In this document: piece by piece, positions 3,239 to 35,647 of the stretch
Numbering within the stretch: position 1 is the first letter of the stretch
Layout of the letters: every line of letters starts with the position of its first letter
From: Octopus bimaculoides
Taxonomy: Eukaryota
Length of the DNA stretch: 64,000 bases
Direction: 5' to 3'
NCBI RefSeq assembly: GCF_001194135.2
Contig: NC_068984.1
Location: 16,124,295 to 16,188,294, forward strand
The notes under the pieces: model-generated
The model's input: the letters and a program-made list of their open reading frames with translations, nothing else
What the model was told of the DNA's origin: nothing
Database searches by the model: none
Translations under genes and position numbers: made by a program

Positions 3239-3311
3239 CTTTTGTTTTAAGAAAGATTTGGAGGTGAAATGAAACAGGCCAGACTTTTCAAGAACTTTTG
3301 CTATGCAACGC
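3239..3311 (-). CDS. Exon 16 (RCIAKVLEKSGLFHFTSKSFLKQK), phase 2 to 0; next exon not found in the window
   Basis: ttttttttag|G...AAG|gtaaaa; 'SGLFHF' degenerate PG.YYF. Confidence 0.88.
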
Positions 3312-33300: not shown

Positions 33301-35647
33301 CCAGGTAAGTCAAGGTTTGCAAATATTTGCTGTGCTGTCTGCAAAAGTTGGTATAGAACTGGTGGATATCTAATTTGTTAAATGACATGGAATACCAGAT
33401 CTTTTGAGGAGTGAGGTGTGTTGTGTAGAAGGATATCATGAAATAGCTTTGGTAAGGCAATGTTTAGACAATCTAATGGCTAAGAAAAAGCTCAACGTTT
33501 CCTATTGGGAACAATTTTACAACCATTTCATTGATAAAGTATTTATTGTCATTAACAGTTTTTTTTTCTTTGAAAGACCATTGATATCTGCAGGAGAAAA
33601 CACAATAGAATTTCACATAGAATACTTACAGGGTAAATGTGTATTCTCCTTCCAAATTAAAAGGAAGGACCAAAGATCTATCAGGAGGCATTTGTAAATC
33701 ATAACCACCGAGTACTGCCACGAATGTTTGCCCATTATGAACAATCTAGAATTAAACAGAATCATATTTGAATTAGACATTTTAAAATTGTTTAGACAAA
33801 AAGAAAGATGGCTGCCAGGACTACATTGTGGAATACAAATTTCTTTTTTATAATGGTAGGTTGCTAAAATCACTCATTTATTTTACTGCTAAATTAATCA
33901 GATTTAGAAAAGAAATTCATTTTTGTGGACATCTGTAAATGATTAGACAGTGTTGGCAGACTCATTAGAGTATCAGCTAAGATAATAATAATAATAATAA
34001 TAATAATAATAATAATAATAATAATAATAATAATAATAATAATAATAATCATCATCATCATCATTTAACGTCCGCTTTCCATGCTAGTATGGGATGGACG
34101 ATTTGNNNNNNNNNNNNNNNNNNNNNNNNNNNNNNNNNNNNNNNNNNNNNNNNNNNNNNNNNNNNNNNNNNNNNNNNNNNNNNNNNNNNNNNNNNNNNNN
34201 NNNNNNNNNNNNNNNNNNNNNNNNNNNNNNNNNNNNNNNNNNNNNNNNNNNNNNNNNNNNNNNNNNNNNNNNNNNNNNNNNNNNNNNNNNNNNNNNNNNN
34301 NNNNNNNNNNNNNNNNNNNNNNNNNNNNNNNNNNNNNNNNNNNNNNNNNNNNNNNNNNNNNNNNNNNNNNNNNNNNNNNNNNNNNNNNNNNNNNNNNNNN
34401 NNNNNNNNNNNNNNNNNNNNNNNNNNNNNNNNNNNNNNNNNNNNNNNNNNNNNNNNNNNNNNNNNNNNNNNNNNNNNNNNNNNNNNNNNNNNNNNNNNNN
34501 NNNNNNNNNNNNNNNNNNNNNNNNNNNNNNNNNNNNNNNNNNNNNNNNNNNNNNNNNNNNNNNNNNNNNNNNNNNNNNNNNNNNNNNNNNNNNNNNNNNN
34601 NNNNNNNNNNNNNNNNNNNNNNNNNNNNNNNNNNNNNNNNNNNNNNNNNNNNNNNNNNNNNNNNNNNNNNNNNNNNNNNNNNNNNNNNNNNNNNNNNNNN
34701 NNNNNNNNNNNNNNNNNNNNNNNNNNNNNNNNNNNNNNNNNNNNNNNNNNNNNNNNNNNNNNNNNNNNNNNNNNNNNNNNNNNNNTATAGTTAATGCCAT
34801 AAAAATTCAGAAACTTCAAGAGAATGTGAAACAATTAATATCTGTGTAAACCAATAGGCGTCATCAACAACACTACTAACCATGTGACAAATCACATGAC
34901 CACCGTGTTCCTGTAGACAGTTCAAGACAGTTTTCGGTTGCAGACGAAGTCCAATACAGGATTGGAATTTATCTGGTTGACCAATCTTTTTCTTATTTCT
35001 TTATTGCCCACAAGGGGCTAAACATAGAGGGGACAAACGAGGACAAACAAAGGGGTTAAGTCGATTACATCGACCCCAGTGCGTAACTGGTACTTAATTT
35101 ATCGACCCCGATAGGATGAAAGGTAAAGTCGACCTCGGTGGAATTTGAACTCAGAACATAAAGACAGACGAAATACCTATTTCGTTATTGCCCACAAGGG
35201 GCTAAACATAGAGGGAACAAACAAGAACAGACGAACGGATTAAGTGGATTACATCGATCCCAGTGCGTAACTGGTACTTAATTTATCGACCCCGAAAGGA
35301 TGAAAGGCAAAGTCGACCTCGGCGGAATTTGAACTCAGAACGTAACAGCAGACGAAATACCGCTAAGCATTTCGCCCGGCGTGCTAACGATTCTGCCAGC
35401 TCGCCGCCGCCCGGTCGACCATTCTTTTTCTGCCCACAAAACTATTAAGACAATACTCTTTCATCTGTCTATACATCTCATTGGTTAGAAAACATCCTTG
35501 GTTATATTCTGTCATAATGCTTAGCATCGAAACAAAACCCTTAAAGTAGCAATTGATTAATCAAACCGCATAACATACCTGTCCTTCTTCAAGTGAAAGG
35601 TTTTGAGGTATGAAACCTTTCTGACCAATTTTAACGTTGTGTGTCAT
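3239..35647 (-). CDS. Spliced gene (3'-incomplete) encoding a protein of at least 6 tandem cupredoxin-like domains; join of the 16 exons listed below
   Basis: 16 exons with AG/GT boundaries and matching intron phases give 1710 nt (570 codons) without a stop. Recurrent motifs: H-x-I/V-x-V...GF...I..GD/E.V.W.W...H.V/I.Q...GF.SG...F.xPG.YYY/F...G.I.V. These follow the plastocyanin/amicyanin-type cupredoxin strand order. Confidence 0.9.
3962..4134 (-). CDS. Exon 15 (VQEVSVNIGDIRPDPIVINLNDIVCWVFKVPKLYDLQEVDFLKRVISSETKDEELVK), phase 0 to 2
   Basis: tttttcttcag|GTC...CG|gtacag; overlaps ORF 3889..4077. Confidence 0.92.
5160..5958 (-). mobile_element. Internally deleted mariner (Tc1/mariner) relic
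   Basis: Minus strand encodes ...LLHRPYSPDLAPADFHLFP... (YSPDLAP motif). TIR-like end TA-CGAGGTGGTATGAAAAAGTTCTTGG at about 5932-5958. Confidence 0.8.
6357..6405 (-). CDS. Exon 14 (FPIKKIGVIQVTTQTQ), phase 2 to 0
   Basis: ttttcttttcag|T...CAG|gtaaaa; terminal G.I.V strand of domain 5. Confidence 0.87.
8085..8365 (-). mobile_element. 281-bp non-autonomous retro-insertion carrying the hammerhead motif and an (AAT)n tract
   Basis: Flanked by the perfect 13-bp direct repeat AAGACAAAAAGTT at 8072-8084 and 8366-8378. Confidence 0.75.
8145..8190 (-). ncRNA. Minimal type I hammerhead ribozyme motif (Penelope-like retroelement type)
   Basis: Minus strand reads GACAC-CUGAAGA-A-GGCUG(GAGGCUGUAU)CAGCC-GAAA-CG-UU-GUGUU. 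Stem I is GACAC/GUGUU, stem II is 5 perfect bp, stem III is the palindrome ACGU, and the predicted cleavage triplet is GUU. Confidence 0.75.
8394..8506 (-). CDS. Exon 13 (VTYSYEPVQGGFNSGAVRESPSAFMHQFHTPGTYYYQ), phase 0 to 2
   Basis: catgtttag|GTT...AG|gtacga; GF.SG...F.H.F..PG.YYY motif. Confidence 0.94.
8849..8935 (+). mobile_element. Isolated C2H2 finger, likely an RTE LINE 3' relic
   Basis: TESSTCSICQNVCMASAGLKRHMYVHRT*; no splice context. Confidence 0.5.
14134..14250 (-). CDS. Exon 12 (NHTIHITEDGYEKHAITIRPHDYVWWVWQNEKLPHNIVQ), phase 0 to 0
   Basis: ctcttctag|AAT...CAG|gtaatg; W.W...PHN.VQ cupredoxin motif. Confidence 0.94.
14751..14908 (-). CDS. Exon 11 (KTDEMDEESKEILSKVGLICVCITTIGVYTYTVTCIQDIVSTCTVIAKPAPK), phase 1 to 0
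   Basis: tattttcag|AT...AAG|gtaaag; degenerate 'IGVYTY' version of PG.Y.Y. Confidence 0.88.
17002..17133 (-). CDS. Exon 10 (LLRLETNDRIWWNWIDKDNKISSFNELDRYINPVVKQPLLCCI), phase 1 to 1
   Basis: gttttccag|AT...G|gtaagt; within ORF 16946..17155. Confidence 0.92.
17330..18270. repeat. Three diverged tandem copies of a 325-bp unit in the intron between exons 9 and 10
   Basis: CAGCAAATAATTTGTTTGC at 17342 and 17667; GATATCAACATGCA at 17652 and 17977; AGGTTGAAAC in all three copies. Confidence 0.85.
18476..18636 (-). CDS. Exon 9 (SQGLMAQTFTKPGVYYYSDQNEQFSADIIGTIIVKSKPKDHHVKVNNQTGFIC), phase 2 to 1
   Basis: ctctttccag|T...G|gtgagt; overlaps ORF 18435..18623. Confidence 0.94.
19650..19772. mobile_element. 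Short TIR element (Tc1/pogo-like MITE)
   Basis: TA-CAGGGTGTCCACAAAGTCTGGGTACATGGAG ... CTCCATGTACCCAGACCTTGTGGAC. Confidence 0.6.
20935..20969 (-). CDS. Exon 8, 35-nt microexon (PVEDGFMWMEP), phase 0 to 2
   Basis: ttctttgacag|CCT...AG|gtaagt; P..xGF motif fits the domain. Confidence 0.87.
21665..22045 (+). mobile_element. SINE family C with (GAT)n tail. Other copies at about 2350-2570, 16200-16640, 18290-18440, 25165-25345, 26320-26520, 28230-28420, 34050-34105
   Basis: Shared GGAGTGGTTGGCGTTAGGAAGGGCATCCAGC...CCAACCCATGCCAGCATGGAAAGCGGACGTTAAACGATGATGAT. Confidence 0.85.
22824..22895 (-). CDS. Exon 7 (CENSHAVFQIEPPGLNTSLYQTYE), phase 0 to 0
   Basis: gttggtag|TGT...GAG|gtaaat; H.V.Q motif. 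Confidence 0.88.
23708..23839. mobile_element. 132-bp palindromic MITE flanked by TA (Tc1/mariner type)
   Basis: ~52-bp arms CAGGAAGTTAATTATATG...TTACATCCA with few mismatches; TA at 23706-7 and 23840-1. Confidence 0.75.
24263..24359 (-). CDS. Exon 6 (EYKINVLDNMFQPSILVIEEGEIVWWHWSQDL), phase 2 to 0
   Basis: taattatag|G...CTG|gtcagt; F.P..L.I..GE.V.W.W motif; within ORF 24182..24442. Confidence 0.93.
24610..24812 (+). mobile_element. Helentron-associated (HINE/DINE-like) non-autonomous element, 3' part
   Basis: (ACAA)n microsatellite followed by the terminal stem-loop TACCTCAGCCTT-TACT-AAGGCGGAGGTA. Confidence 0.5.
26558..26644 (-). CDS. Exon 5 (KPGVYYFQTESSDVNKLHYCAVVVSEMN), phase 2 to 2
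   Basis: tttttctgcag|A...CG|gtatgt; PG.YYF motif. Confidence 0.92.
27390..27812 (-). mobile_element. RTE-clade LINE 3' end relic with C2H2 finger
   Basis: LPRIMLYGELAIGTRPRGGLKFRFKDQLK...DRTAWRNAI...C.FC...LGLQSHLRHKH. Confidence 0.85.
30385..30730 (-). mobile_element. CR1-type LINE 3' end with (ATT)n tail
   Basis: Frameshifted HFF.LRIAE.WN.LPASVVN...SFKT motif followed by an ATT repeat. Confidence 0.6.
31019..31063 (-). CDS. Exon 4 (PQMGTLTGSHRQQF), phase 2 to 2
   Basis: tactttttcag|A...AA|gtaaat; supplies the 'GS..QQF' segment preceding KPGVYYF. Confidence 0.8.
31978..32190 (-). CDS. Exon 3 (KGTVGQILTITVHPRQEHTIEVTNDGFQEDIIRISKGTSIKWYWKQCAVRHTVLEVLYCVRHARFYAKSQ), phase 2 to 2
   Basis: ttctaag|G...CT|gtaagc; overlaps ORF 31974..32180. 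Confidence 0.93.
33630..33745 (-). CDS. Exon 2 (IVHNGQTFVAVLGGYDLQMPPDRSLVLPFNLEGEYTFT), phase 0 to 2
   Basis: ttctag|ATT...ACCCT|gtaagt; contains F.xEGEYTF, a variant of the F.xPG.Y motif. Confidence 0.88.
35579..35647 (-). CDS. Cupredoxin-repeat gene, coding exon 1 (MTHNVKIGQKGFIPQNLSLEEGQ)
   Basis: Donor CAG|GTATGT at 35578. Acceptor-like tctttctgcag ends at 35659. ATG at 35647 has A at -3 and an upstream in-frame TAA if unspliced. The exact start is uncertain. Confidence 0.8.

Follow-up and report, generated by a model that had tools for sequence, protein, structure and literature searches.

Small cupredoxins of the plastocyanin type are copper electron carriers of bacteria and plastids. 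Plastocyanin, amicyanin, and pseudoazurin (PF00127) are domains of ~100 amino acids (aa) with the motifs P-H-N-[IV]-V on strand 4 and P-G-x-Y-x-Y on strand 7, and they reside in the periplasm or the lumen. Tandem cupredoxin domains are found in the multicopper oxidases and their relatives (ceruloplasmin, hephaestin, factors V/VIII, laccase, and NirK), which are secreted proteins with larger, paired domains and trinuclear or type-1 copper sites that include H-x-H. The cupredoxin sandwich also occurs with its metal ligands lost, as a binding or structural surface, in ephrin ectodomains and plant early-nodulin-like phytocyanins, all of which are single extracellular or glycosylphosphatidylinositol-anchored domains. 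Giant intracellular arrays of beta-sandwiches are known from titin and obscurin. Here, we analyze a stretch of 64,000 nucleotides (nt) from Octopus bimaculoides (contig NC_068984.1, positions 16,124,295 to 16,188,294; hereafter, the window), in which a multi-exon gene on the minus strand encodes six tandem cupredoxin-like domains. How does this gene compare with the described systems?

The octopus domains and their orthologues share with PF00127 proteins the fold, the size, both strand motifs, and a whole-domain profile match. They differ in that the Cys, the second His, and the Met of the copper site are lost, in that seven domains stand in tandem, and in that the proteins exceed 3,000 aa and would be cytoplasmic. 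With the multicopper oxidases they share the tandem arrangement, but their domains are only 85 to 110 aa long and contain no H-x-H. Like titin, obscurin, and the bacterial surface giant GhpA (a Foldseek match), the family consists of a string of small beta-sandwiches with no enzymatic domain. Unlike titin and obscurin, its head is made of cupredoxin rather than immunoglobulin (Ig) domains, a kinase or other catalytic domain is missing, and a lipidation motif is predicted at the N terminus. The closest proteins are orthologous giants of the LOC115211041 type (named for the Octopus sinensis gene), which are colinear with the window model over domains 1 to 6. The window shows these first six domains, whereas the N-terminal MGxGxS motif, domain 7, the CHB_HEX_C-like domain, and the fibronectin type III (fn3) domains of these giants are not seen in it.

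On the basis of these comparisons, we propose that the segment from 35647 to 3239 on the minus strand would be the 5' part of an octopod gene whose full product is most likely ~3,000 aa or longer. The first ~700 residues would form seven small cupredoxin-fold domains (~85 to 110 aa), six of them in the window, joined strand to strand with almost no linker. These domains would descend from blue-copper domains of the plastocyanin/amicyanin type, of the V-x-W-x-W ... H-N-[IV] kind, that lost the Cys-His-Met loop. Behind the head, the full-length protein would carry a CHB_HEX_C/Fn3_assoc beta-sandwich and then a long fn3 array, the whole being an all-beta giant of the cytoplasm that a lipid tethers to a membrane. 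The copper-less head would then serve as a rigid structural or protein-binding module beside the membrane anchor and not as a redox center. We hold this reading as a whole, a copper-less head on a lipid-tethered cytoplasmic scaffold, with somewhat more confidence than doubt.

The gene was rebuilt independently from stop-free stretches, AG and GT sites, and reading phase. The rebuild yielded 16 phase-consistent GT-AG exons from 35647 to 3239 that encode 570 aa in 1,710 nt without a stop. In its number of exons, its length, and the coordinates of its ends, the model agreed with the initial annotation, a reading of the letters alone, and all twelve motifs quoted there lay on the minus strand where it had placed them. 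Thirteen exons were plain from the rebuild, and three short ones (31063-31019, 20969-20935, and 6405-6357) were found by phase-constrained scans. A pyrimidine tract precedes the AG in every intron. We then compared this model with Argonauta hians protein P0007 (GAB1598182; 804 aa), which is named after LOC115211041. The two were 67% identical over 582 aligned columns, and a tblastn search of the window with P0007 returned 15 colinear matches (E values down to 4e-27) whose ends were the rebuilt exon boundaries (Table 1). At the Argonauta locus (L001), introns occupy the same positions as in the octopus gene. The equivalent of exon 7 is skipped by the Argonauta gene model, yet it is intact in the DNA (L001:15945-16016; 67% identity, E=6e-10). 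The upstream flanks of the octopus and Argonauta genes showed no detectable DNA similarity. Because protein identity, colinearity, and shared introns are retained next to flanks without such similarity, the exons are under selection. The exon chain is a real gene, far beyond chance.

Could the locus nevertheless be a decaying pseudogene or an artifact of a gappy assembly? Three gaps lie within it, one exon of domain 1 is absent from the readable sequence, and the introns are full of transposon debris. These features would suit such an explanation, which we consider very improbable given 570 codons without a stop, canonical splice sites at all 16 exons, the level of identity to Argonauta beside dissimilar flanks, and intron positions that are identical in both octopods.

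The six repeats in the window are 76 to 111 aa long and show 12 to 30% mutual identity. Their common pattern comprises x-H-x-I-x-V, G-F-x-P, a V-W-W-x-W strand, H-N-[IV]-x-Q-V, G-F-x-S-G, P-G-x-Y-Y-Y, and G-x-I-x-V. The plastocyanin/amicyanin type proposed in the initial annotation was borne out by profile searches. A profile of nine orthologues matched amicyanin in the PDB (E=2.5e-5, residues 22 to 104 of 105), followed by plastocyanin, pseudoazurin, and NirK (nitrite reductases). Orthologues passed the Pfam cutoffs for Copper-bind (29.7 and 30.7 bits; cutoff, 21.2) and Cupredoxin_1 (30 to 34.5 bits; cutoff, 27), and for Copper-bind the octopus exons fell on either side of the cutoff (21.4 bits for an earlier partial concatenate, 20.3 bits for the window model). 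Domain 5 is the most plastocyanin-like, aligning with cyanobacterial plastocyanin over 76 residues; exons 12 to 14 together cover plastocyanin residues 16 to 92.

AlphaFold2 modeling of Argonauta P0007 with a nine-sequence alignment gave a predicted local distance difference test (pLDDT) score of 76.8 and a predicted template modeling (pTM) score of 0.71, with eight or so strands per domain (a run with five sequences reached a pLDDT of 49 and was discarded in favor of this one). The top PDB matches of the model in Foldseek were factor VIII (4e-19), factor V, ceruloplasmin, a multicopper oxidase, NirK, and laccases. A non-cupredoxin fold, the outcome that had been named beforehand as refuting the assignment, was not found in this check. 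Judged from profiles and the predicted structure, the repeats are cupredoxin-like Greek-key beta-sandwiches of the plastocyanin/amicyanin type. For a chain of 804 residues and eight domains, a pTM of 0.71 suggests that the predicted head forms a rigid assembly with a definite shape and not beads on a string.

Are these domains still able to carry copper? In alignments with plastocyanin and amicyanin, the sole surviving ligand of the type-1 site was the first His (strand 4), which is present as part of the H-N-[IV] motif in several domains. Ser stands in place of the Cys ligand (in other domains, Thr or Asp), Ile or Leu in place of the second His, and Val or Leu in place of the Met; substitutions at three of the four ligand positions hold for every domain of both the window model and the family consensus. 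The 570 aa contain neither C-x(1-4)-H-x(2-8)-M nor H-x-H. In P0045, a metagenomic bacterial relative whose domain is likewise of the V-x-W-x-W type, the full copper loop is kept (YYCIPHGAPGGVGM), and the loss is thus specific to the animal and choanoflagellate family. An animal electron-transfer protein with many working blue-copper domains would fit the Pfam Copper-bind and PDB plastocyanin/amicyanin matches and the retained first His. We regard such a protein as highly unlikely, because Cys-x-x-His-x-x-Met is missing from the strand 7-8 loop, and with the Cys-His-Met loop lost the domains cannot act as type-1 copper electron carriers. By its sequence, the head lacks the type-1 copper site.

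One set of residues in domain 2 deserves separate mention. A Cys/His quartet is formed by C-x3-H on strand 4 (32100-32060, minus strand) and H-x-C on strand 8 (26600-26575, minus strand), at roughly the copper-binding position of cupredoxins (columns 240 to 325 of alignment A2, the alignment of orthologues). The quartet is present in octopus, Argonauta, Solemya, Patella (two species), Elysia (two species), Ptychodera, and Macrostomum. One potential explanation for this retention is that domain 2 was rebuilt as a new metal site where copper once sat, which would make the head a sensor of metal or redox state and not a passive scaffold. The quartet is, however, incomplete in Bulinus, Diadema, Anneissia, and the choanoflagellate Didymoeca, and the two cysteines of the quartet could simply be buried. 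We find a sensor doubtful and retain the structural or protein-binding head as the preferred interpretation.

We then asked how widely the gene is distributed. Word-indexed searches were nearly blind to this giant cupredoxin-fn3 family (1, 4, and 4 matches); the sole relative that such a search retrieved with the exon peptides was a fragment of 229 aa from a snail, Candidula unifasciata. When this fragment was used in phmmer against 1.84 billion representatives, 114 matches were obtained, 36 of them with E <1e-10, and the top ones were proteins of 2,961 to 4,042 aa from gastropods, echinoderms, a hemichordate, and an orthonectid. The long relatives include those of Elysia chlorotica (RUS88738; 3,427 aa), Bulinus truncatus (2,961 aa, partial), Diadema setosum (XP_072180602; 4,042 aa), Ptychodera flava (XP_070557720; 3,697 aa), Anneissia japonica (LOC117115100; 3,241 aa), and Intoshia linei (OAF69324; 3,004 aa). 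Shorter models were found in Macrostomum lignano, Patella, Solemya velum, and Mytilus, and a choanoflagellate relative came from the transcriptome of Didymoeca costata (EP00039_P008018; 1,646 aa). Adineta rotifers gave weaker phmmer matches and are probably members as well.

The gene has therefore been predicted in cephalopods, in at least seven other animal lineages (gastropods, bivalves, echinoderms, a hemichordate, a flatworm, an orthonectid, and probably rotifers), and in a choanoflagellate, and in this respect the label "unrecognised" given by the initial annotation does not hold. Every predicted relative is labeled "uncharacterized" or "hypothetical." Among the 30 match clusters looked up there was no credible vertebrate, arthropod, or nematode member, and the taxa in which the family turned up are all lineages that keep motile cilia. 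Two further matches, a grass-carp protein (P0067; an Ig V-set array) and a Flavobacterium protein (P0086; presumably a SprB-type repeat, as judged by eye), were rejected as relatives; both match through the strand motif G-x-Y-x-Y-x-C/D. A full-text literature search found no publication on the giant cupredoxin-fn3 family, and it has neither a specific Pfam family nor a solved relative beyond generic fn3. The family is uncharacterized and extends from a choanoflagellate to bilaterians.

In the nine aligned orthologues, the N-terminal ~850 aa are colinear and comprise seven cupredoxin-like domains and one CHB_HEX_C-like domain (alignment A2). The full order is a low-complexity N terminus, the seven cupredoxin-like domains, the CHB_HEX_C/Fn3_assoc sandwich, a W-x-W-W-N-C motif, and the fn3 array. 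No catalytic domain was found in the orthologues, and matches to thioredoxin and TK in some gene models were set aside as weak or as coming from fused neighbouring genes. Domains 1 to 6 of this series are those of the window, and Argonauta P0007 continues into domain 7 and the CHB_HEX_C/Fn3_assoc domain. The estimate of at least six domains thus stands for the window, although family members have seven. The description of the product as made only of such repeats has to be revised, since the window probably covers the N-terminal ~15% of a protein of 3,000 to 4,000 aa with CHB_HEX_C/Fn3_assoc and fn3 domains. A motif, [KR]-R-P-Y-S-[AS], was also observed 20 to 45 residues before the C terminus in the Elysia, Ptychodera, and Anneissia proteins (P0116, P0006, and P0009).

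The reading frame is still open at the donor of exon 16, and Argonauta residues 557 to 804 (domain 7 onward) had no match in positions 1 to 3238 of the window; the gene must therefore continue beyond it. In Argonauta, a 2,536-aa fn3 gene model begins 1 kb downstream of the 804-aa model on the same strand (L001:34984-43951; BAAFZT010000002.1). This adjacency suggests that the cephalopod gene is probably also a giant, split into two models in the Argonauta annotation.

At the other end, a pyrimidine tract and an AG lie 11 nt upstream of the modeled ATG in both octopods (window 35648-35670, minus strand; L001:9985-10000), and the similarity between octopus and Argonauta stops abruptly at this AG. 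On account of this conserved acceptor, an upstream exon must exist, and the modeled exon 1 is probably internal, with its true start at 35658. With a G carried over from the upstream exon, the split codon at this junction would be read as Asp in octopus but as Glu in Argonauta. A further 35 to 100 N-terminal residues are present in eight of the nine aligned orthologues; orthologue extensions of this kind start with MGxGxS. A 5' exon with this motif was not found on the minus strand of the window between 35660 and 64000 or in the 10 kb upstream in Argonauta, and blastn and tblastx comparisons of the octopus and Argonauta upstream regions revealed nothing conserved. Loose MGxGxS matches at 58176 and 46751 were rejected for want of a convincing donor. 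The initial annotation had noted that no obvious signal peptide or transmembrane helix stood at the putative N terminus. The window model indeed has no hydrophobic N terminus, but its N terminus is probably not the true one.

Where in the cell would such a protein reside? None of the nine orthologues has a signal peptide or membrane helix (no 19-residue Kyte-Doolittle segment scored ≥1.9). Models from 11 of 14 sequences, belonging to eight genera and including the choanoflagellate, start with MG[AST]G[AS/P]S, which satisfies the N-myristoylation pattern PROSITE PS00008 at Gly2 and is polar and followed by low-complexity sequence. These features are consistent with the suggestion of the initial annotation that the product is possibly intracellular, and they suggest a myristoylated, cytoplasmic protein with a scaffold or binding role. 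Alternatively, the protein may be secreted or act in adhesion at the cell surface, with a signal peptide on the missing 5' exon. The true 5' end of the cephalopod gene probably lies upstream of the modeled exons, domains of the fn3 and CHB_HEX_C types typically occur in extracellular proteins and in those of bacterial surfaces, and secretion is the rule for bacterial relatives such as P0045, which carries a signal peptide and a C terminus that we take to resemble a sorting signal of the type IX secretion system. We judge secretion improbable, since the 11 orthologue models start with the polar motif and contain neither a hydrophobic h-region nor a membrane helix.

Several observations weigh against the lipid-tethered cytoplasmic scaffold that we prefer. 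The MGxGxS exon is missing from the searched regions of both octopods, so that myristoylation of the cephalopod protein is putative. Domains of the fn3 and CHB_HEX_C types are commoner outside cells, and the cytoplasmic call leans on missing export signals and a short motif; all functional statements derive from sequence. The domain 2 quartet could bind metal. As to the fold, the window model by itself scored 20.3 bits for Pfam Copper-bind, just under the cutoff. The Foldseek template modeling (TM) scores were ~0.1, and Ig, fn3, and other beta-sandwich arrays also scored well. The low TM scores can be explained by the packing of the domains, which differs from that in all matches. Together with the Ig and fn3 matches, they mean that the choice of a cupredoxin over a generic Greek-key sandwich leans on the sequence-profile matches.

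A link to cilia is speculative. The MGxGxS start presumably resembles that of UNC119-type ciliary cargo. The CHB_HEX_C/Fn3_assoc-like domain after domain 7 (A2 profile positions 777 to 846) matched residues 26 to 98 of DZANK1 (PDB 11xu_G1; E=6e-4), a microtubule-associated protein of the doublets of the ciliary transition zone (bioRxiv 10.64898/2026.06.11.731632). The likeness to DZANK1 is weak and limited to this domain, which lies outside the window, and the rest of DZANK1 is unrelated. Taken with the UNC119-like N terminus and the taxa in which the family was found, these points allow a bolder conjecture: a pre-metazoan, N-myristoylated all-beta giant of 3,000 to 4,000 aa that would act, tethered to the membrane, as a ruler or scaffold in ciliated or flagellated cells, with a Cys2His2 metal site rebuilt in domain 2, and in which a bacterial surface architecture would have been turned inward. 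We offer this conjecture as a long shot.

Domain 1 as modeled is probably short of one exon. Argonauta residues 24 to 39 (SVIFEWDKKTTQNITQ) are 16 extra residues that make up the W-x-W strand of domain 1, and neither tblastn nor a scan for extra exons found a match to them in the readable part of octopus intron 1. In Argonauta, the corresponding 48-nt exon sits within an intron of 1,830 nt, with ~1,290 nt separating it from exon 1 and ~495 nt from exon 2; octopus intron 1 measures 1,833 nt. With spacing this similar, the exon would be expected at ~34240 to 34290, inside the assembly gap of that intron. Judging from the Argonauta spacing, the gap probably hides the exon, which would explain why domain 1 is too short (76 aa) and would make the 570-aa product 16 residues short. 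The gaps in introns 8 and 12 are harmless, because in the proteins of Argonauta and Candidula the residues on the two sides of each junction directly follow one another.

Intron 8 also contains an 80-aa open frame (...FGIRPTILRKGVSQLYQPWWYFISFAPVHSAVEM...; 20532-20771, minus strand) that resembles the first half of a cupredoxin-like domain. We did not count it as an exon, as its match was at chance level (E=0.25) and it abuts repeat sequence; it could be a dead duplicate exon or a coincidence.

The window as a whole is AT-rich (35 to 40% G+C), is interrupted by 16 assembly gaps, and abounds in microsatellites and transposon debris. Decayed transposase fragments of the mariner/Mos1 type were observed at three places, one of which gave a weak match to HTH_48 (E=0.005); the other pieces were recognized by eye and had no Pfam match. 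One short interspersed element (translation ...LSSNS[AT]EVDFAFHPFGVDKLSTS...) is present in many copies, several of them in introns of the gene.

Table 1. Exons of the cupredoxin-domain gene and other features of the window (E values and identities refer to comparisons with Argonauta P0007 unless another protein is named)
Feature	Position	Strand	Content and comparison
Exon 1 as modeled (MTHNVKIGQKGFIPQNLSLEEGQ)	35579..35647	-	Domain 1, strands 1-2; donor GTATGT, phase 0; matches aa 1-23
Assembly gap	34106..34785	-	Intron 1; probably hides a 48-nt phase 0/0 exon (~16 aa, W-x-W strand of domain 1)
Exon 2 (IVHNGQTF...EGEYTFT)	33630..33745	-	Domain 1, middle and strand 7; acceptor TTCTAG, donor GTAAGT; aa 40-78, E=9e-15, 77% identity (tblastn)
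Exon 3 (EHTIEV...IKWYWKQCAVRHTVLEV...)	31978..32190	-	Domain 1, last strand; domain 2, first half; aa 81-149, E=4e-27, 70% identity (tblastn)
Exon 4 (PQMGTLTGSHRQQFK)	31019..31063	-	Domain 2 loop; from phase and splice-site scan; aa 150-164, 80% identity
Putative LINE (long interspersed nuclear element) ORF2 C-terminal tail, by eye	27520-27820	-	Intron 4; no Pfam match
Exon 5 (KPGVYYFQTESSDVNKLHYCAVVVSEMN)	26558..26644	-	Domain 2, strands 7-8; E=2e-10, 82% identity
Exon 6 (EYKINV...EIVWWHWSQDL)	24263..24359	-	First half of domain 3; E=1e-12, 84% identity
Exon 7 (CENSHAVFQIEPPGLNTSLYQTYE)	22824..22895	-	His strand of domain 3; also in the Candidula protein
Exon 8 (PVEDGFMWMEP)	20935..20969	-	Domain 3 loop; acceptor TTTGACAG, donor GTAAGT; matches PEEDGFMWNQP
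Assembly gap	19003-19121		Intron 8
Exon 9 (KPGVYYYSDQ...GTIIVKSKPK, then DHHVKVNNQTGFIC)	18476..18636	-	End of domain 3 and start of domain 4; E=1e-21; 61% identity to Candidula
Exon 10 (DLLRLETNDRIWWNWIDK...)	17002..17133	-	Middle of domain 4; E=9e-17
Exon 11 (...IGVYTYTVTC...TVIAKPAPK)	14751..14908	-	Helical insert and strands 7-8 of domain 4; E=1e-21
Exon 12 (NHTIHI...YVWWVWQNEKLPHNIVQ)	14134..14250	-	First half of domain 5; E=1e-18, 88% identity
Assembly gap	12460-13230		Intron 12
Exon 13 (VTYSYEPVQGGF...HTPGTYYYQ)	8394..8506	-	Second half of domain 5; E=9e-17
Exon 14 (FPIKKIGVIQVTTQTQ)	6357..6405	-	Last strand of domain 5; from phase scan; 81% identity
Mariner/Mos1-type transposase fragment	5091-5795	-	Intron 14; decayed
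Exon 15 (VQEVSVNIG...IVCWVFK...)	3962..4134	-	First half of domain 6; E=5e-15
Exon 16 (RCIAKVLEKSGLFHFTSKSFLKQK)	3239..3311	-	Domain 6, strand 7; frame open at GTAAAA donor
Short interspersed element copies	35252-35362, 35068-35184, 12303-12392, 10989-11102	-	From frame listing
Short interspersed element copies	4758-4868, 4566-4658, 4325-4480, and others	-	From frame listing
Mariner/Mos1-type transposase fragment	44063-44320	-	Decayed
Mariner/Mos1-type transposase fragment	46097-46366	-	Decayed
RVT_1 reverse-transcriptase fragment	56681-57061	+	30.3 bits

For the annotation of the family, our analysis indicates that cephalopod gene models are truncated at the 5' end, that in Argonauta one exon is passed over by the model and the gene is probably divided between two models, and that one exon was probably lost in a gap of the octopus assembly. 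The gene itself was already known from prediction pipelines; what is new is the occurrence of copper-less small cupredoxins in what would be a giant intracellular protein. This protein is among the larger conserved animal proteins without an assigned function, and its head would be a clear case of a redox fold turned to a structural role.

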